Origin: Octopus bimaculoides
Lineage: Eukaryota
NCBI RefSeq assembly: GCF_001194135.2
Contig: NC_068987.1
Coordinates: forward strand, 96,802,274 to 96,864,220
DNA: 61,947 nucleotides
Reading direction: 5' to 3'
Of this stretch, positions 7,345-56,347 are shown in pieces; position 1 is the stretch's first letter, and the number at the start of each line of letters is the position of its first letter. The translations under genes and the position numbers were made by a program. A model generated the notes under the pieces. The model did no database searches and was not told where the DNA came from. It was given only the letters and a program-made list of their open reading frames with translations.

Positions 7345-7540
7345 GGTGTGGCTGTGTGGCTGAGAAATTTGCTTCTTAGCCACATGATTTCCGGTTCAGT
7401 TCCACTCTGTGTTACCTTGGACAAGTGTCTTCTATGTCTCCAGGTTGACCAAAACCTTGTGAGTGGTGTATTTGGCAGACGGAAGCTGAAAGAAGCGCAT
7501 TGTGTGTGTGTGTGTGTGCGTGTGCGTGTGTGTGTGTGTC
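7345..7540 (+). mobile_element. tRNA-derived SINE with (TG)n tail; related copies ~214-385, 4381-4530, 24770-24895(-), 29002-29100(-)
   Basis: tggctgtgtgg A-box, ggttcagttcc B-box-like motif, accttggacaagtgtctt core, microsatellite tail. Confidence 0.7.
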
Positions 7541-8205: not shown

Positions 8206-8436
8206 TTCCTAGTCTTTGTCTCTCCACTTTTCTTGATAACTGGTGTTGGTTTGCTTACATCTCTGTAACTTAGTGGTTTGGCAAAAGAAACTGAAAGAAT
8301 AAATATCAGACTTAAAAATAAGTACTGGGTGGGTGGGGGGTAATTTCGACTAAATCTTTCAAAGTATTGCCCCAGCATGGCTGCAGTTCAATGACTGAAA
8401 CAGGTAAAAGATAAATGTCATAGTCATCTCTCCTAA

Positions 8437-8625
<189 letters not shown>

Positions 8626-9570: not shown

Positions 9571-10180
9571 TGATGTAGTGAAGAGAATGAAATACTAGCC
9601 AGTTGAGATAATACTTCACATATGAGTCTATCCATGATTGTAATAGCAACTGGAAAAGTCAGAAATTCAAGCTCTGCTACTAGTATTTTGTGAACACAGT
9701 GAAGGCACTTAAGGACAGACTACCTACTTCTGAATTATTGTTTAGCTCTAGCATATCTCTGAGGTGATCTATGGTCAGATATTTTGTCTGTAATTATCCT
9801 ATCTTTTTCCTAGGCTCTGTGAACTCAAGATCATGTTATTCAGTGTGTCTCTTGTGATTTGAAGGACGTTTGTCTGCTATTCCTAGCTATATATATGTGC
9901 TGCTGATAGTATAGTTCACTGTTATAGGCTGCAGGTAGTCCTGTGATTTGTTATCATGAATGCTGAGTCTAGCAAGTTTCCATAGAAAATGCATGTAATA
10001 GTCTCTTATCCAGGGAGATATTCACTTCTCATCTAAATAATGTTACAGAAAACCCAGATAAGCACCAGTCTTATGAATAATTGCCTTTCAAAAAATATTA
10101 GTTAGCTGACCAGCTGGCTAATGTTTCCTATTAGATCCTTTGTGATGAAGAAAGGATTAGCTAGCTGACTAGCCACAAAC

Positions 10181-15702: not shown

Positions 15703-18700
15703 CTCCTACAATTATTAACAATAGCTTGGAATATTCTTCTAGGTCAGATTCACTGGCTAGAGACAGCTATGGGTTTTTTAAAAAAAATATATTTTGGAAT
15801 GACAGGAATGTTAGAACTTCTATTTTAGGTGTTAAGACAGTTTAACAAATGGTTACCCAATCTATAACTATTTCTGTCATTACACTCCTGTAAGTGGGGA
15901 AAGAACTGGATATTTTACAAATATATGTCCTCTTTTCCTTTTTGTCTAATATAGTTACTCTCATATCAACTATAATGGGCTCTTCACTTACTGGAAATAG
16001 CAACAAAATCTTTTTGAAATTGCATTCTTCCATCTTAAATAAGGAAAGAACACATTAATGTCATCATCATCGTTTAACGGCCGCTTTCCATGCTGGCATG
16101 GTTTGACCGAGGACTGGCAAGCCAGGAGGCTGCACCAGGCTCCAATCTGATCTGGCTAAGTTTCTACAGCTAGATGCCCTTCCTAACACCAACCACTCCA
16201 AGGGTGTAGTGGGCGGTTTTTATGTGCCACTGGCACGGGACCAGTCTGGTGGCACATACGATTATAAGACAGCATGATCATTGCTGGCATACCTTTTGAT
16301 CATGTTTCTTGTATCATTGTTGACCTCAGTTAACCTTTCTGATACCATCCTACCTGAAACTGCCCCTGGCTCTGATATAAACTTCCGGTTTTAAAGTGAT
16401 CTAAATTAAAACCTTCCATCAAAATTTCACGTCAATTTATGTTCATATGGTAACAAAAGGGTTAACCAACCAGTATGTGACTAAGCTTACTGCAAAAATT
16501 CCCTGGATATTTTTTTGTGTGCAGGGCTCAATGGAATTTGTGGCGTTCATGCATTTCTCAAAGCATTGTTTAGTGGTTCAGTTATAATTGAAAATAGCAA
16601 GCAGTGTGAAAGTTGGTTCAGTGTGTGTGTGTGCTTTATATAATATTCATCATCATTTAACGTCTGCTTTCCATGCTAGCATGGGTTGGACGATTTGACT
16701 GAAGACTGGTGAAACCGGATGGCTGCACCAGGCTCCAGTCTGATCTGGCAGAGTTTCTACAGCTGGATGCCCTAAAGACAATAGTTTCTCAGTCCAGAAA
16801 AATTCCTGGTTCTTATTTCAGGTTTCCTTGGGATTAAACAGATGATGTATACACATATATACTTACATAATGGGCTTCCACACAGTTACCTTCTACCAAA
16901 TTCACTTACAAGGCATTAGTCAACCTGGGTCTATAGAAGAAGAAACTTGCCCAAGGAGTTGTAGAATGGGACTGAACCTGAAATGTGTTGCAAAGTGAAC
17001 TTTTTAACAATGCATTCATGCCTGACCACTACACAATGTCAGGGCTGACCTGGGGCTGCACAACAACTTAGAGTTACACACTTTTTTGGCCTCTAGTTTA
17101 GCAGAAATTTATGATAATCTCTTTGTGGTTGCTCAAACCTGATAGAACTACAGTAAAACTCAAATCTTACCATACAGTCTGGAATGGTATTCATGTTTTC
17201 AAGTCAACAGTGCTATCTTTACAGAGTTGCTTGATTTGTGAGTAAAGTTCCTTTTCAAACCACATTCTCTTTCCCTAGAACAAAGAGAGAGAGAGAAAAA
17301 AAGCAGAAATAACTTCCTACTGTAGGAACAAGGCATGGAATTTTGGGGATGGTCAATTACATCAACTCAAGTTATTGATTAACTGGCACTTATTTCATTG
17401 ACCTTGAAAGGATAATGGCAAAGTTGACCTCAGCAGAATTTGAAATCAGAATGGAAAGACAGACGAAATTCCATTAAGCATTTTGTCTGACGTGCTAATG
17501 ATTCTGTCAGGTTGCTGCCTTGGAAGTATTAAGTAGCATAAGATATATTGCACTTGAAAATAATATGGGATGTAACCATTTTGATGAATTAGATTTGTTC
17601 AATTGAGGCTGACCTGAGACTAAATTACAAGCTATGTTACTGGTGTGAATCACCATGATACAGATAACTATCAATATTTCAGATAGTTTCCAGTCCGTCA
17701 TGTCAGGTTACTTTTTTTCAACTACAACTTTAATCTGTATGTTCTCCCCTGTCATTGGCTATTCACCAATATATAAAAATTTTTATTCCTGAGAAAAGAT
17801 ATTAAAAAAAAAAAATAATCAAACTTAGCCCAAACATCCTGTACTCCCTGTTACGTGGATTTAGCCATTGAGTACCAGATGTTTGACCACGCACTTCAGT
17901 TAGGGTTTGAGCTACAAGTTCTTGTTTAGTTATGTAGTGTACTACCAAACCGGCCATCCATATTCCTTGAACTTGCAAATTCAGTAGCTAGATTTATCTC
18001 CCAAATCCCTACATGACTGTAGTTTAGAAGTCTGCTTCCGGGTTCGATATCACTCCCGAGCACCTTGAACAAATGCTCTTTTAACTATACATTGTGAAAG
18101 CAATATGGTATACGAAACTACAGAAATCACCCACGGAAAATAAATTAGTGGTCACACGACTAAAGGGAGGTGACTCTAAAATGTCAACTCGTTAAAAATG
18201 AACATCAGTACTAGTATCGAGATAATTTAGGAAAACCCTTGAAAGCCGTGCTCCAGTATAACCCAGACCCCAAACAGGAAATCCTGCGAGTAAAGACTAC
18301 AATCCCAAGTTCGTGGTTCATAGCCACAGTATCGTCATTAAGGCACAGAAACTTAAAACCATGAAAAATAGCTGCTCTTTTGATACGATTATATTTTCGT
18401 ACTAGAAATATATCGAGGAATAAGAAACAACAGGAGGACGATCAGAAACCGAAAGGCTGTGTCGATGTAAGAAAAAAATTTCAATCTTTTAAGTTGAGAT
18501 TATTTGTTCGAAAGTGGAGGCGCAATGGCCCAGTGGACTCGCAGTTTCAATTCCCAGACCGGGCGTTGTGAGTGTTTATTGAGCGAAAACACCTAAAGCC
18601 CCACGAGGTTCCGGCATGGGATGGTGGCGAACCCTGCTGTACTCTTCCACCACAACTTTCTCTCACTCTTACTTCCCGTTTCTGTTGTGCCTGTAATTCA

Positions 18701-18990
18701 AAGGGTCAGCCTTGTCACACTGAATATCCCCGAGAATTACGTTAAGGGTACACGTGTCTGTGGAGTGCTCAGCCACTTTCACGAGCAGGCTGTTCCGTTG
18801 ATCGGATCAACTGGAACCCTCGACGTCGTGCCAATAATTTGTTCGAAAAACGATAATCATAGAAACAATAATACATTATCATCATTATTTTGACTTCCAC
18901 TTCTCCATGCTTGTACAATTTTTTGAGGCATATTTTCTTCAGCCGGACGCTTTTCATATCGCTCACCTTCACTAGTTTCCTAAGCAAGAT
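15703..18990 (-). pseudogene. Candidate unannotated multi-exon gene or pseudogene (putative exons ending 18967; 17788-17654; 17274-17171; 16033-15857; 15766-15703)
   Basis: Several consensus-quality splice pairs in non-repeat sequence; 59-codon open phase-0 exon; hydrophobic N-terminus; one-base frame break in the 104-nt exon. No recognisable homology. Confidence 0.3.
18514..18836 (+). mobile_element. tRNA-derived SINE (GGAGGCGCAATGG head family) with 12-bp TSD
   Basis: atttgttcgaaa at 18502-18513 and 18837-18848; internal deletions relative to other copies. Confidence 0.9.
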
Positions 18991-21817: not shown

Positions 21818-22743
21818 CTAACAGTGCCGAGATGACTTCGACCTTGCTTTCTTCACCTCTTCCATCAAGTTAGCCACATACCTGATCTCTCTTTCCAAGT
21901 CTTCAACCTTTTCTTTCAATCTTGCATTCTCTCTTAACAGTTCCTCCTCTTCACCAAGTCTTATCTTGGCCTCAGCTTTCATCTTTTGCCGATACCGAAT
22001 GGCAGCATTTTTGTTCTGGAGCCTCTTCCTCTCTTTCTTGCTTAGTTGTTGCTGTTCTACCCCTGCAGTGCTATCGTACGGCAACGGTGATGATGACGGT
22101 GATGATGGTAACTCGGTACTTTTGCTGTCTGAATTATATGGACTGTGGCGGTTGTTATTCTTTGTATGACACGACTTAGATCCCTTAACTTTTCCATGAA
22201 ACTTTTCTGGCTGTGGAGAGTCTGAGAGTATCTCTGGTTGTGGGAAGGGAGAGGGAAGTATTTCTAGTGAAAAGGGAGAGCCAGTGGTGCTTGAAGGAGA
22301 ACTATCAAGATAAGAGTCAGTTCCTGAATCGCTAGGTGAAGGTGAAAGGGCATTTGCAATTCCTGAATCGCCAAGTGAAGATGAAAAGGCATCTGAACTG
22401 TCACTTTCACATTTCATTAATCCCATGTTGCTTGCCAACAGCCCATCTACACTGACTTGCTGCGGCAAATCTGTGCAGGGCTGCACTGGCTTGGCCTGAA
22501 GGTCATTTGTTGTCACACCAGGATTAAGTACGCTTTCTAAATCATGGCATGATAATGGTGAAGACATAAGTTCTTCATAGCTTTGGTGATCAAAGGATGC
22601 AAATGTTTCCACATCCTGGCTCAGTTGAAGAGGTGAGTAGTCAAGGATAGAATCACCCAGAGAATACATATTTCTGCTACTGACATTGCTGACAGAGGCA
22701 GTAAAATCAGACGGTAAAGCTTCTTTATCGTAAAGAAATATAT
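21818..22743 (-). CDS. ATF4: ATF4/CREB2-type bZIP transcription factor, last coding exon (exon 4)
   Basis: Acceptor tctttctttacag| at 22744; open frame to TAG at 21818-21820; C-terminal basic region and zipper KKERKRLQNKNAAIRYRQK...LKEKVEDLEREIRYVANLMEEVKKARSK typical of ATF4/ATF5; Ser/Pro-rich middle with DSGTDS degron. Confidence 0.93.
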
Positions 22744-22920
22744 CTGTAAAGAAAGAAAGAAAAGAGTGTCAGTGCATGTAATGTTACAGTGAATAAAAGA
22801 GCAATTTTATATAAAAATAAGAACCTAATACTAATTAAGAGACTGACAATTAGACAAGTATCTATATATATATATATAGCAATGCTTCTATGAATACAAC
22901 TCGATCTTGTTTAAGAAACT

Positions 22921-23278
22921 TGTTGGCACTCCATCGCCTACGACGTTCAGGGTTCCAGTTGATCCGATCAATGGAACAGCCTGCTCGTGAAATTAACGTG
23001 CAAGTGGCTCTGCACTCCACACACACATGTACCCTCAACGTAATTCTCGGGGATATTCAGCGTGACAAGGCTGACACTTTGAATTACAGGCACAACAGAA
23101 ACAGGAAGTAAGAGTGAGAGAAAGTTGTGGTGGAAGAGTACAGCAGGGTTCGCCACTATCCCCTGCTGGAGCTTCGTGGAGCTTTAGGTGTTTTCGCTCA
23201 ATAAACACTCACAACGCCCAGTCTGGGAATCAAAACCACGAGTCCGCTGCCCTAACCACTGGGCCATTGCGCCTCCAC
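22921..23278 (-). mobile_element. Same tRNA-derived SINE family, in ATF4 intron 3, 13-bp TSD
   Basis: tgtttaagaaact at 22908-22920 and 23279-23291; A-box TGGCCCAGTGG. Confidence 0.92.
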
Positions 23279-23723
23279 TGTTTAAGAAACTAGGTAAAGA
23301 ATATACTATGTTAGCAGATACTTAACTGTATTTTAATCGCTTCAGTGCTTTTCTATAAATTCTTTTTAACTCAACTAATGTTAGCAAGTAAGCCTTGCTG
23401 AAAATCTAGCTAAACTGAAAACTCTTCCCCGAATGATCAATGCTTTATCTTTTACACAATCATGTCAAATCCAATAGCATTCAAGTTATGTGCAATTATC
23501 CTATCTCAAATTATTTTATATGAGCTGTTAATTTTATTACATTAACAGAAGACAAAAAATTCACAACTATAATTAACATCTTTTAAGCCAAAGAATCTAT
23601 AGAGTCTGATGTGTTACTATCTTAAATATGCTTTCATGTAATGCATAAAAAAAAGCCCTGTCAAAGCCTGAATTTCTTGCATTGTTTGTTACAACAGCTA
23701 AGCAGTTGGTCTAAAGAACTTAC

Positions 23724-23895
23724 CTAAGTCATTCACCCTTTCGTCAAGAAAGGATTTTGAATCTGACAAAGAATCAACAAAAGTACCGATGTCCATTAGG
23801 TCACCTTTCATCAAACTCGTACCCAGTTTTCCCTCGCCCAACCAGTCGAGTCCGGAATCGCTCAGTTCCATATCCATGTTTCTTTCGGTTATCAT
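23724..23895 (-). CDS. ATF4: ATF4 first coding part of exon 3 (exon 23724-23948)
   Basis: MITERNMDMELSDSGLDWLGEG...VNDL-G|gtaagt phase-1 donor joins exon 4 (G|AT=Asp) in frame, giving 365 aa from 23895 or 359 aa from the better-Kozak AUG at 23877. Confidence 0.85.
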
Positions 23896-26800
23896 CTATA
23901 TGAGATATTTCGGTGGCAAATGCCAAAACGCAAACATATTGAAGAGACCTGCAATAAAGAAAAAGTCAGTTTGAATAAACTATGATAAAAAAACAATGCA
24001 ATGACAACATTAAAAAGAAAATCTTTCTCTTGCAATCCAATCCTGAAAACTTGGTCTCAATATTCCCCACACACGTTACTGTAAACATTTTCCAGCAGCA
24101 CAGTAATAATTAAAAGCCAATACAATTACACAAGTTTAATGAATGCACTCACCTCCATTGATGCCAGACGAGAAATATTTTACTAAACCAGCTAAAATGG
24201 CAGTTGGGAAACATGTTCGAATCACTATTAAGGAAACAACAATATCAGATGGGGAGCGAAGAAGAATTTCTACAAAGAATCGGCAAATCTTCAAAGAGTT
24301 GTTCGCAGCAACAGAACAATTGTTCTCGATTGGAAGCAGATGCAATGTAATTAATAATATAGCCAAAGGGAAACTACTCTTAAGAGTTCTGAAAACTAAA
24401 TACAAATATGGTGACACCTTACGCTTATGAACAAAGGGGAGCCACGTCAAGGTTCCTTTGTTGGACTTTTGTTTTTTGTCAAAAGTGTTATTTGCTAACG
24501 TAGTGTCTTCGTTAAAAGACATATCGACATGTTGCAAGCGTCATCATACATTGCTTATATCGACGACACTATTGAGAGAAACATCAGCATCACGGCTTCG
24601 AAATTATCTGACGTGGAGCACTTCGAAGATTTTCTTTTTAAATCCAATAAATCGACCCCAGTAATTATTCTATCGATTTTTTGCCGAACCGGCAGGTTAA
24701 GGGGAACGTAAACAAACCAACACCGGTTTTCAAGCGGTAGGAGTAAGTAAGCAGATGCATCTAACTATTCACGACGAACTTTTCATAGTTTCCGTCTACC
24801 AAATTCACTCAGTCCGGGGCTGTAGCAGAAGACACTTGCCCAAGGTAGCGCGCAGAGGGACTGAACCCGGAACTACGTGGTCGCAAAGCGAGCCTTTCAA
24901 CATTATTTCACAGCGTAGGCTACCTTATCATTGGCGAAACACACACACTATCTTGTCAGTAAAGTTAAATATAAATCAACAGACGAGCACACAGACACGC
25001 GTACTACTCCCTCCCACCTCCATATTGAATGACGAACAAAACATTCCATTCAAGCCAGAGAGCCCATTATTTTCAGAACCAAACAGCCTTTTTGATATTA
25101 TTAATTGATGATATCCAACATTACTTGAGCTAGTTGGCCTAAATCACACGCTAGATATTATACAATTACACGTGTCTAAATATATTCTCGAGTGTAGTGA
25201 GAGAGGGAGGCGATCATAACATTTATCATTCATGCGAAGATAGGAATTAAGATTGGTTCATTTCGTTTATTGTACTTTATCTTCTGTGAATTTTTACTTT
25301 AGTTTGGTTCCAGATTACTTCTCTCCTTAAGTAGACATATGCTTAGTGTTGTCATCCAAACTAAATTTTTAGAAACGACATCCAACATATCATTCCGTTT
25401 TTAAGATAAGGTGATGAGGGTTGAAAGCGACTCGTAGGTCGAGCAACTTCGTAGATCAGTTGTGTTAGTTGATTGTAACTGAATAACAGTATCTAATGAA
25501 ATTGACTGCAAAAATAGATACAGGCATGGCTGTATCGTTTAATTAGTACGCTTCCCAATTGCTGTTCCAGGTTTGATCGTACCCAGAAGAAATCTTAAAT
25601 TGCTCGTAAGTATTAGATTTAGTCCGTCGTCCGGTTTAACACTACAACTTGGAATAGCTTCGGCGGAATATACTCTAATTGCAAGCACTATGTACCAGGC
25701 CTCTCCGCTTCGAGTATATAATCAATGAACTGAGCTTCTTTCGTAAAGGTCATGGAACCTGTCCTACCGCGTGTGACGTAGCCATACCCATATAAGTGTG
25801 TCCCTCGACTTTCTAAACTTTTAGAAAAAAATTGCTATTTTTTAAATGAAATTGTCTACAATAATTTTAAGATGCGGTAGATTACGATTAAATCAGAATA
25901 AAAAAAAAATGTGGCGGTGCGCACATACATATTGACACACCACTATACGGGCTTCGCATTCCGCTTTGTTTCCCTTTTATAGTAATTACACATTGTTTTA
26001 AAATGATTTTAATTCAGCATTCATTATATAAGCACATCATGTATAATAAAAACCAAAGACAAGTTAATTCCGCTCAGTAAATGCGAAAACTAAAAGCAGT
26101 CCATTCGAAACTATCTTTTTAAAGGGTTCAAGCAAATTGCCATTCCGATTTTCAAGTATGATAGAAATAATAGCGTTGGCTATTATTTCTAGCAGATCAA
26201 ATGATCACGTAAAGACTTTTGTAGGTCAACCTTAATCGAACAGAGCATAGATCAAAACCACGCCACCCAGTATGTCCCTTTTTTAAAACGGCTGAGTGAG
26301 ATCTGGTTATTTCAAGCAAGTCGAATGACCCTCAAGAGGCTCTCTCAGATCCTAGGAACTTTATATTAAAATCCATATTTTCAGGCCATTATTTACGTCT
26401 ATTCTTCTTGGATTTTTATAAACAGGAGATTAAAACGTATTACAACTCAGAAAAGCCAATCCCATACACACAAACCGAATATAAAAACCTTTAAATGCCT
26501 AACATCCTCAAAAATCATACAGACAAGCACTAGCTGAACATTAAAACGAATATTGACAATCATTCTTTGATTTTATCGACGACTAGATTAATTTATTGAA
26601 CCCCCAACCACAAAAAAGAAAAAAGAAAAAGAAATCATGTGTTTGGCTGACAAAGTGAAGTCATTAACTTTGCAGGAACGACACGTGTGCAAGGCAACTA
26701 ACAGTTCAACCCAAATCAGTTCGTCTGTATTACTGAAAGCCTGTATCACAGGACATTAACCTGTACATTTCACATACACACTATACAAGACAGAGAGATG

Positions 26801-27616
26801 TGAAGAAATTTAATGAAAATACTATAGAGAATTTCTCGAGGTTTATATTAATAAAAAAAAAATAGTCGAAGAAACACGGAAATGTAAGCAGGAACATCGG
26901 AATGAAATTAAAAGTTCAGTTTTTTTTTTTTACATAGATTTTCGAACCTGTAAAATATACAACCATTTTAAGGAAGGAAAATAAAATAAACAAAGCATTT
27001 TTTTTTGGCGGGGCAAATTTGTTTGGGTTCAGAATCATAAGGACCATCTCTTATTAACACATTTTAACTGCACTCGAAAGCGATTTCGAGGTGGACGGAC
27101 GACAAATGAAAATGTCAAAGTAGACAAATCGATAATTCTTCATAATTTTTTATTATATATAAAAAGGCGATTTATATGGGTCATCGTATTTGTAAGTTCT
27201 CGTCCATGAAATCTACTCTGATGTTCATAAATTTAATCGGACATTGATTATTGTGAACAACTAAAAGGCGGGGGTGGCGGGAATCAATAGCAATCGACAT
27301 CTTTAAGTACAAGAACAAAACAGATTTAGTCCGTTGACTCCAGCTTGGTTGCGAGGCAAATGTGATCACAGTAGAGTTTGAAATCAAAATGCATTAAAAA
27401 ATATCGCGAGGCATTTCGTCCTTTGTTCTACTGATTCTGCCACGTAATGTCTTAACAATTACAAGAGCGCGATGGGTGGTAGTAACGATATACTTTGTTT
27501 AAGTGAACAGGATGATCAACGAAGCAAAATATTTCATTTTAATGTATCATTATCGCCATTTGTTCATAATACAACATATGAGTGTGAAAAAAATAATAAA
27601 ACAGTACTTACGCCAT
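23801..27616 (-). promoter_or_regulatory. ATF4 inhibitory uORF2, spliced (27616-27612, 24224-24153, 23948-23801), 74 codons, overlaps main ORF out of frame
   Basis: 5+72+148=225 nt, open: MADSNMFPNCHFSWFSKIFLVWHQWRSLQYVCVLAFATEISHIDDNRKKHGYGTERFRTRLVGRGKTGYEFDER*; stop TGA at 23803-23801. Confidence 0.78.
24153..24224 (-). other. ATF4: ATF4 5' leader exon 2 (72 nt)
   Basis: Pyrimidine tract and taatag| acceptor at 24225; perfect GAG|gtgagt donor at 24152; keeps uORF2 open across both junctions. Confidence 0.8.
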
Positions 27617-27715
27617 TGTGCAAAGCTAAACTTCGCAACTAGAAAGTTGCTACAGAAGAAATTAGTAAGACATCTTTGGAGCAAACTTGTTAATGACAAT
27701 GTAGGCAGTTAAGTG
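27612..27715 (-). other. ATF4: ATF4 5' leader exon 1 (TSS approximate)
   Basis: Starts ~30 nt after TATATAAG (27738-27745); contains ATG TCT TAC TAA and ends ATGGC|gtaagt (donor 27611). Confidence 0.75.
27662..27673 (-). promoter_or_regulatory. ATF4 uORF1 (Met-Ser-Tyr-stop)
   Basis: ATG TCT TAC TAA; same 3-codon length and M-x-Y pattern as the vertebrate ATF4 uORF1. Confidence 0.8.
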
Positions 27716-27737: not shown

Positions 27738-27975
27738 CTTATATAGCTAGATCCAAATTTTCGTAATATTGAAAATTTCTACAAAAGACACCAAAATTTC
27801 TCAAAAATAAACTAATTAATTGTGATAATTACAAAATAACAACAAAACAACAAGTTTTTAAAATGTAAAATAGAGTAATACATTTGGCACTATTTGTTTT
27901 CGCGTGTTTATATCGGCGTTATGTATGCAGGCTGATGCAATAACATGAAGGCCTTTTAACTGATTGGTCAATTGG
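27738..27975 (-). promoter_or_regulatory. Candidate ATF4 promoter: TATA box, CARE/AARE, two CCAAT boxes
   Basis: TATATAAG 27738-27745; TGATGCAAT 27933-27941; ATTGG at 27963-27967 and 27971-27975 (CCAAT on minus strand). Confidence 0.6.
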
Positions 27976-28391
27976 TGTCTCACCCAAGAATAAATTTTAT
28001 ACATACTTATGTGATATACATGCGCGCGTGTGTGTGTGTGTGTGTGTGTGTGCGCGTGTATGTGTATGTGTGTGTGTGTGTTCAGAGAACATGTAAGTGG
28101 GTGTTAATTTATGACACACACACTCACACACACACACATACACACGCACACACACACACATACACACGCACATACACACACATATCCTTTCTATCTTCAC
28201 AATTTTTCGCTCTCATGTTTTTCTTAGCCTGGCATTCTTCTATTATTCATTCTTAATACCCTGTGTACATTTTCTCATTCATTTCCTTTCTTTCTTTCTT
28301 TCTTTCTACACATACAACATATTTTATTTCCTGTACGAATATCGCTTGGCCTAACGTCAGGATTCATTATAGAACATGTTATATCATGAAC

Positions 28392-28392
<1 letters not shown>

Positions 28393-28455
<63 letters not shown>
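28393..28455. repeat. (TCTA)n microsatellite at gap edge; other large arrays (TG)n 177-212, 37614-37682, 53858-53946; (TATG)n 29413-29466, 30061-30126, 40560-40680; (CA)n 54225-54314; (TTTC)n ~56710-56815
   Basis: Direct reading of simple tandem repeats. Confidence 0.95.
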
Positions 28456-29483
28456 NNNNNNNNNNNNNNNNNNNNNNNNNNNNNNNNNNNNNNNNNNNNN
28501 NNNNNNNNNNNNNNNNNNNNNNNNNNNNNNNNNNNNNNNNNNNNNNNNNNNNNNNNNNNNNNNNNNNNNNNNNNNNNNNNNNNNNNNNNNNNNNNNNNNN
28601 NNNNNNNNNNNNNNNNNNNNNNNNNNNNNNNNNNNNNNNNNNNNNNNNNNNNNNNNNNNNNNNNNNNNNNNNNNNNNNNNNNNNNNNNNNNNNNNNNNNN
28701 NNNNNNNNNNNNNNNNNNNNNNNNNNNNNNNNNNNNNNNNNNNNNNNNNNNNNNNATATATATATATATATATATATATATAGACTGCACCGCACGAAGA
28801 ATTATAGTCGAACGAATCGATCCCAGTACTTATTTTTACTTTCTTAAAAGCCTTGTACTTATTTTATCCTTCTCCTTTGCCAAACCACTAAGTTACGGTG
28901 AACCTAGACGCACATACACAAACACGCACGCACGCACGCACAAACGCACTCATGCACGCACACTCGCGCGCGCGCGCGCACACACACACACACGACAGGC
29001 TTCTTTTAGTTTCCGTCAACCAAATCCACTTACAAGTCTTTGGTCGGCCCGAAGCTACAGTAGGTGTCATGCAGTGGGATTAACTCGGAACCATATGGTT
29101 GCTACTATCCATTGATACGGAAGAAGAATGCTGGAAAGATCTATTTTCATTTATACGCCTATAAACCACTATAGATTAAATTTACAGCCTGATCTTCCTC
29201 CGGTGATCAGTGGTATGTGTCAGCAGCTGGTTAGTTCTATCGATTTCTTATTGATTTCTTTGAGGGAGAGAATAATCTATTGTACCGATATCAGTCATCG
29301 ACTGATGCTTATTTTATCGACCTAGGATAGATGAAAAACAATGTCAACCACCGCCACCAAATGTTTAAAGAACTTTAATACTTTCAAGTGTTTGGTCTGA
29401 CGCTTAGCCAATCATGTATGTATGTATGTATGTATGTATGTATGTATGTATGTATGTATGTATGTACGCACGTATATATGTAT

Positions 29484-56138: not shown

Positions 56139-56347
56139 GTGTTTGTCCCCCCCAACATCGCTTGACAACCGATGCTGGTGTGTTTACGTCCCCGTAACTT
56201 AGCGGTTCGGCAAAAGAGACCAATAGAATAAGTACTAGGCTTACAAAGAATAAGTCCTGGGGGTCGATTTGCTCGACTAAAGGCGGTGCTCCAGCATGGC
56301 CGCAGTCAAATGACTGAAACAAGTAAAAGAGTAAAAGAGTAAAAGAG
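56139..56347. mobile_element. Young copy of a SINE-like family with (gagtaaaa)n end; older copies ~400-500, 8210-8410, 24660-24750, 34620-34800
   Basis: Shared cgttacggggacgtaaac..ccagcatggccgcagtcaaatgactgaaacaagtaaaa blocks. Confidence 0.7.

Follow-up and report, generated by a model that had tools for sequence, protein, structure and literature searches.

The ATF4 leader of Octopus bimaculoides carries a short upstream open reading frame and a two-exon, overlapping second one, in an arrangement consistent with integrated-stress-response control

Introduction

In the mouse, translation of ATF4 is governed by a pair of upstream open reading frames (uORFs): a uORF1 of three codons and a uORF2 that runs into the coding region, for which delayed reinitiation was demonstrated by mutagenesis (PMC2172506). 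Phosphorylation of eIF2alpha induces ATF4, with uORF1 acting positively and uORF2 negatively, in both mouse (PMC2172506) and Drosophila (PMC4433282). In Drosophila, the opposite effects of the two uORFs were established with reporters, and uORF2 overlaps ATF4 by 125 nt (PMC4433282). The corresponding overlap in the mouse is 83 nt, and a review describes the two ATF4 uORFs as conserved from invertebrates to mammals (PMC5666893). In human ATF4, retention of leader intron 1 has been described, with variant V1 set against V2 (PMC8933703). Here, we analyse the leader of the ATF4 gene on the minus strand of a 61,947-nt stretch of the Octopus bimaculoides genome (assembly GCF_001194135.2, contig NC_068987.1, positions 96,802,274 to 96,864,220). 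This whole stretch is referred to as the window, and all coordinates are window positions. Literature searches turned up no publication dealing with uORFs of octopus ATF4 or with dual coding in ATF4.

We find that the octopus leader is likely to be a canonical integrated-stress-response arrangement, by analogy with the systems above. In this arrangement, leader exon 1 is joined directly to the exon with the ATF4 start (27612/23948), ATF4 would be controlled by delayed reinitiation, and a middle exon that had been proposed from the window's letters without database searches (the original prediction) has no part.

Results

Five assembled transcript contigs from three octopod species were available for the leader. 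L001 is a Logan contig of 1636 nt from run SRR32601320 and encodes a 359-amino-acid protein that is 100% identical to that of the window. L002 to L004, from three further runs, belong to a species whose protein is 94% identical, and L007 to a species whose protein is 65% identical. Because the whole protein sits on so short a contig, L001 represents a spliced mRNA. It aligns to the window at 27697-27612, 23948-23724 and 22743-21419, the first and last blocks at 100%. Its junction reads ...CACAATGGC/GTCTCTTCAATATG..., with 27612 joined straight to 23948, and 23724 is joined to 22743. The direct join 27612/23948 was present in 5/5 contigs, and uORF2 was 50 codons long in all five octopod sequences. 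The real uORF2 therefore comprises 50 codons split between two exons, and the leader consists of two exons instead of three. The uORF architecture of the original prediction is therefore found in the mature mRNA, while the junctions that it had named, 27612/24224 and 24153/23948, are absent from all five contigs. Contigs assembled from De Bruijn graphs reveal the dominant path, and a minor isoform might escape them.

The elements of the leader all lie on the minus strand. A TATA-like box read in the sequence (TATATAAG, 27738-27745) is found upstream of the leader exon; it is identical in O. vulgaris and reads TATATAAAG in Argonauta. The genome match of the transcript contigs starts at 27706-27685, about 35-60 nt downstream of the box, and uORF1 follows the box after ~65 nt (27745-27612 region). 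Leader exon 1, delimited by transcript alignments with an approximate 5' end, spans 27612-27706; L001 aligns to 27697-27612 of it at 100% identity, and L002 to 27706-27612. The first AUG downstream of the TATA-like box opens uORF1 (ATG TCT TAC TAA, three codons, 27662-27673, context aagATGt), which is present in L001. A spacer of 45 nt (27617-27661) separates it from the start of uORF2, ATGGC in the strong context acaATGg, which forms the last 5 nt of exon 1 (27612-27616) and is immediately followed by the donor GTAAGT. Intron 1, of 3663 nt (23949-27611), lies inside uORF2 codon 2, and its acceptor reads ...TTGCAG/GTC at 23948. According to the transcripts, codons 2-50 and the TGA of uORF2 occupy 23801-23948. 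The spliced frame runs ATG GC/G TCT CTT CAA TAT GTT ... AGG TGA and encodes the peptide MASLQYVCVLAFATEISHIDDNRKKHGYGTERFRTRLVGRGKTGYEFDER.

Downstream of the uORF2 start, three clustered in-frame ATGs are candidate starts of ATF4, at 23895 (weak context, tagATGa), 23877 (strong context, aacATGg) and 23871 (gatATGg). The uORF2 AUG precedes them by 58-82 nt. The uORF2 stop (TGA, 23803-23801) lies 95 nt past the ATG at 23895 and 77 nt past that at 23877, or 71-95 nt past the three overall, in frame +2 relative to ATF4. The start contexts of uORF1, uORF2 and ATF4, as read in the sequence, fit a switch model. The sequence agrees with the original prediction on uORF1, on the exact 45-nt spacer and on ATG GC at 27616-27612 with its donor, which the transcripts use. 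The acceptor at 23948 and the uORF2 stop 95 nt inside the main frame, in another frame, likewise hold, and the clustered ATF4 starts had been overlooked. As a separate observation, the spacer contains a perfect 6-bp hairpin (GCAACT-TTCT-AGTTGC, 27650-27635) that is present in the minimum-free-energy fold and invariant across all octopod sequences. In other mollusc leaders, small GC stems (e.g. GCCC...GGGC) were seen by eye near the equivalent position.

The overlapping, out-of-frame uORF2 is kept in all mollusc leaders examined, and besides the window, where uORF1 encodes MSY, eight further mollusc sequences have a three-codon MSx uORF. In the O. vulgaris genome, uORF1 encodes MSH, the spacer and the uORF2 peptide are identical to those of the window, and the exon boundary is again ATGGC/GTAAGT. 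Among the transcripts, uORF1 is MSH in L002 and MSQ in L007, and the spacer is 45 nt in all octopodids. The Argonauta hians genome has ATG TCT CTC TAA (MSL) as uORF1, a spacer of 44 nt, the boundary ATGGC/GTAAGT and a uORF2 of 50 codons with the same stop (MASFQYVCVLAFATKKSHIDDNREKHGYGTERFRTRLFGRGKPYHGLDER). A distant cephalopod-like transcript, the 5'-truncated JGI metatranscriptome contig L009, whose ATF4 is 29% identical, retains the uORF2 frame (…YVRVLAFAT…HGYG…LLGRG…R*) with the TGA at the same GGTGAC. Three other mollusc transcripts have a uORF2 that overlaps the ATF4 start and ends in this same GGTGAC: L010 (uORF1 MSA, spacer 42 nt, uORF2 67 codons), L011 (MSA, 37 nt, 55 codons) and the 5'-truncated L012 (62 codons). 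In the genome of the gastropod Lymnaea stagnalis (L013), uORF1 (ATG TCA GCT TAA, MSA), a 40-nt spacer and ATGGC/GTAAGT are found at about 8500-8600. Approximately 1.3 kb downstream, at about 9900-10110, ...TTTCAG/AACTTACCAGAATGTATTC... carries uORF2 on. The intron inside uORF2 codon 2 is thus at an identical position in Lymnaea and the octopods. Conservation had been put forward as a check in the original prediction, and the architecture was found in cephalopods, in other mollusc transcripts and in Lymnaea. When JGI metagenome contigs were scanned for exact matches to the conserved cephalopod leader, none came up; L009, which as read has the pattern, was missed as well, its metatranscriptome apparently lying outside the collection.

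We then considered the 72-nt "exon 2" of the original prediction (24153-24224, minus strand), according to which uORF2 was spliced across three exons into 74 codons. Splicing this stretch in silico does yield a 74-codon frame, from ATG 27616 to TGA 23803-23801. The stretch is flanked by ...TAATAG/ and /GTGAGT, its length is a multiple of three, and no stop interrupts it in the uORF2 frame; O. vulgaris retains the two splice signals as well as this open frame. The acceptor is acceptable, and the 3663-nt intron has just one other GTRAGT site besides the donor. Against its constitutive inclusion, 24224-24153 has no alignment among the five contigs of three species, the 100%-identical L001 included. 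A BLAST search of the Argonauta locus also gave no match to it, though exon 1, the last exon and the exon with the ATF4 start did match. Its identity to O. vulgaris (94%) is not above that of many other intron windows (70-96% per 100-nt window), and of the five substitutions that separate it from O. vulgaris, four alter a residue in the uORF2 frame (by eye). In Lymnaea, L010 and L012, ATGGC runs straight on into conserved uORF2 codons. The original prediction had also taken the frame held across two junctions as support for the exon. Since adding or removing this frame-neutral stretch leaves both stop and overlap unchanged, the holding of the frame gave the three-exon model no real support. 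We regard a leader in which this exon is constitutively included, giving a uORF2 of 74 codons, as extremely unlikely.

A second possibility is that the stretch serves as a cassette exon, included rarely or under certain conditions, and that the longer uORF2 and scanning distance modulate ATF4 translation. The good splice signals and frame-neutral inclusion would suit such an exon, and the modulation of human ATF4 by leader splicing, through intron-1 retention (V1 vs V2, PMC8933703), is a precedent in kind. None of the five contigs supports it; as these show the dominant path alone, a minor isoform may be hidden. Conservation does not extend beyond close Octopus species, and inclusion would bring in an extra upstream AUG in strong context with a 20-codon frame. 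This possibility seems improbable to us, if less so than constitutive inclusion, and the splicing-level rheostat of the stress response that had been built on the exon has no support. In conclusion, we take the 72-nt stretch for an intronic pseudo-exon outside the switch; at the very most, it could be a cassette exon of minor use. A protein search with the 74-amino-acid, three-exon uORF2 gave no match and is uninformative on exon-2 inclusion. A transposon or domain origin of the region was rejected: its open reading frames on either strand had no Pfam match, and no repeat is found there within the window.

Next, we asked how the region read in two frames has evolved. In the 95-nt overlap of uORF2 and ATF4 (23801-23895), nine sites vary among four octopodid sequences. 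Eight of the nine are third positions of uORF2 and synonymous in uORF2, and none of the nine is synonymous in ATF4. The binomial probability of at least eight synonymous sites out of nine is about 1e-4 to 4e-4, given the 25-30% synonymous changes expected by chance. As a control, the differences between L001 and L007 in the rest of the coding sequence were spread evenly over codon positions (58/52/59). This pattern in octopodids suggests selection on the uORF2 peptide, and an N-terminal uORF2 motif, MA[STP][LFY][QH][YDN][VI][FC], is common to molluscs. In comparison with Argonauta, the C-terminal part of uORF2 diverges, with 7 synonymous and 12 nonsynonymous changes, which weakens the signal of peptide constraint. 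It is a tentative reading, which we hold to be possible and somewhat doubtful, that the uORF2 of cephalopods, and perhaps of all molluscs, is more than a positional decoy: its 50-residue peptide would be under purifying selection strong enough to override selection on the overlapping ATF4 N-terminus. If it is true, the peptide could be a cis-acting nascent chain or a separate micropeptide.

RNA structure was tried and rejected as the cause of leader conservation, as the whole leader folded no better than shuffles (z=+0.87). RNAalifold gave a covariation term of +0.45 and a single compensatory pair. A candidate hairpin in the overlap had a z near 0 and is broken in L007.

A third frame, uORF3, was overlooked in the original prediction. 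It has 13 codons (MFAFWHLPPKYLI, 23896-23937, minus strand), is nested upstream of ATF4 in the ATF4 frame, and ends in a TAG that abuts the ATG at 23895. It is kept in L007 (MFAFWHLPPRYLI), in Argonauta and in L009 (MCEFWHLPPPPSRYLI). In the reading of a constrained uORF2 peptide, this conserved uORF3, which terminates against the ATF4 AUG, and the intron in uORF2 codon 2 shared by octopus and Lymnaea would accompany the peptide.

Sequence comparison identifies the minus-strand gene as the octopus ATF4 orthologue. The window protein is 89% identical to the O. vulgaris protein named "cyclic AMP-dependent transcription factor ATF-4" by NCBI and 53% identical to Argonauta hians ATF-4-like. Among solved structures, its bZIP region matches human ATF-4 best (PDB 1ci6, E=1e-9), followed by C/EBP-beta (5e-4). 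The identity given in the original prediction is upheld by the O. vulgaris match and by 1ci6 as the best bZIP match. The Pfam families bZIP_1 and bZIP_2 matched the window protein weakly, under the curated cut-off, and Pfam bZIP matches are on record for its mollusc homologues. The protein, of 359-365 amino acids with a C-terminal bZIP, is encoded by 23948-23724 and 22743-21818 on the minus strand. The first coding part is 23724-23895, within the exon that ends at 23724 with donor GTAAGT. The last coding exon, 21818-22743, carries the bZIP and the stop, and the 3' untranslated region reaches at least 21419. Gene callers placed the start at 23877 for L001 (359 amino acids) and at the equivalent of 23895 for L002. 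In a further contig, L006, the ATF4 leader and N-terminus are swapped for unrelated sequence (positions 1-210; P0004, 327 amino acids), the changeover falling within the last exon at a short GGATGTGGAGACA motif that is duplicated. L006 is probably an assembly chimera rather than the product of an alternative promoter.

Further features were noted around the gene. In O. vulgaris (L005, 19289-21693) and Argonauta (L008, 15155-21344), a zinc-type alcohol dehydrogenase-like gene (ADH_N, ADH_zinc_N) lies downstream of ATF4 and tail-to-tail with it; this synteny is kept between the two species. In the window, an interspersed repeat has two copies in opposite orientation, one downstream of the gene (18380-18990, plus strand) and one inside ATF4 intron 2 (22860-23330, minus strand). 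The translations of their open reading frames are ~85% alike (MFIERKHLK...PCCTLPPQLSLTLTS...). Intron 1 contains a short repeat of SINE-like (short interspersed nuclear element) appearance at 24657-24893, with matches in the window at 237-479, 7389-7433, 8232-8305 and 56159-56239 and two further matches in the O. vulgaris locus. At about 28000-28800, shortly upstream of the ATF4 promoter region, a run of N (assembly gap) is flanked by TG/CA and other microsatellites.

Discussion

What stands of the switch in the original prediction is its short uORF1 and its overlapping uORF2 split after ATGGC; the three-exon form of uORF2 does not. We infer the mechanism, delayed reinitiation, from the homologous ATF4 of mouse, human and Drosophila. 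After translating uORF1, ribosomes would resume scanning. In case of plentiful eIF2 ternary complex, they would reinitiate at uORF2 and be carried past the ATF4 start. In case of phosphorylated eIF2alpha, they would regain the ternary complex later, pass over the uORF2 AUG and initiate at the ATF4 AUGs, which follow it by 58-82 nt. With its stop 77 nt upstream of the junction 23724/22743, uORF2, when translated, would also be expected to expose the mRNA to nonsense-mediated decay dependent on the exon junction complex.

Several points weigh against this interpretation. For cephalopods, both the inducibility by stress and a uORF1 that permits reinitiation are extrapolated from the analogous systems. 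The distance from the uORF2 AUG to the ATF4 AUGs (58-82 nt) is shorter than the ~97 nt of the mouse, a figure calculated from a mouse uORF2 of 59 codons and the 83-nt overlap, and the 45-nt spacer is also short. In addition, uORF3 could catch ribosomes that bypass the uORF2 AUG. L002 and L003 have unmatched bases at their 5' ends. Alternatively, the uORFs, though real, might act mainly as a constitutive brake, or through the uORF2 peptide or uORF3, with escape by leaky scanning and no switch sensitive to phosphorylated eIF2alpha. The apparent constraint on the peptide in Octopodidae (8/9 overlap sites synonymous), the conservation of uORF3 in cephalopods and the short distances are in keeping with a brake of this kind, and human ATF4 has extra layers of ribosome queuing, leaky scanning and multiple AUGs (PMC11058473). 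However, the three-codon uORF1 and its spacing are kept from octopus to gastropods, which is a hallmark of reinitiation and needless for a simple brake, and mutagenesis in mouse and Drosophila gave uORF1 and uORF2 opposite roles (PMC2172506, PMC4433282). We therefore consider a brake without a switch unlikely, about as much so as the cassette exon, and favour delayed reinitiation on the two-exon leader.

ATF4 leaders of this type are known from mouse, human and Drosophila, and the octopus has an ordinary, well-conserved example. The same anatomy in cephalopods and gastropods, namely a three-codon uORF1, a spacer of ~40-45 nt, an overlapping uORF2 and an intron after ATGGC, backs the textbook view of an ancient mechanism without extending it. 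The corrected two-exon leader is relevant for the design of octopus ATF4 reporters and for annotation. Modest new leads are the position shared by the intron and a possible constraint on the uORF2 peptide, the latter being the sole element likely to be of interest to specialists in translational control.

A close likeness is seen to mouse and human ATF4, which share with the octopus a three-codon uORF1 and a longer, inhibitory, out-of-frame uORF (uORF2 in the mouse, uORF3 in human numbering) over the ATF4 start. The overlap is 83 nt in the mouse and 71-95 nt in the octopus. As in the human gene, there are several closely spaced in-frame AUGs (PMC11058473) and a leader intron (PMC8933703). The octopus differs in the size of uORF2, 50 codons compared with a human overlapping uORF of 180 nt (PMC13587735). 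It differs from both mouse and human in that its leader is without a start-stop uORF0 and in the uORF3 that abuts the ATF4 ATG. No conserved stem-loop was detected in the octopus overlap, unlike the human SL3. Drosophila crc (ATF4) offers the invertebrate precedent, with two uORFs of which the second overlaps ATF4 in another frame (PMC4433282), although its overlap, at 125 nt, exceeds the 71-95 nt of the octopus. With yeast GCN4, the octopus leader would share the logic of delayed reinitiation set by the eIF2 ternary complex (PMC2172506). GCN4 has four short, non-overlapping uORFs, whereas the inhibitory uORF of the octopus overlaps the main frame. Finally, in a comparison of four octopodid sequences, the amino acid conservation of uORF2 and its synonymous-biased substitutions may resemble those of the conserved-peptide uORFs (CPuORFs) of the ESUCA survey (PMC7530721).

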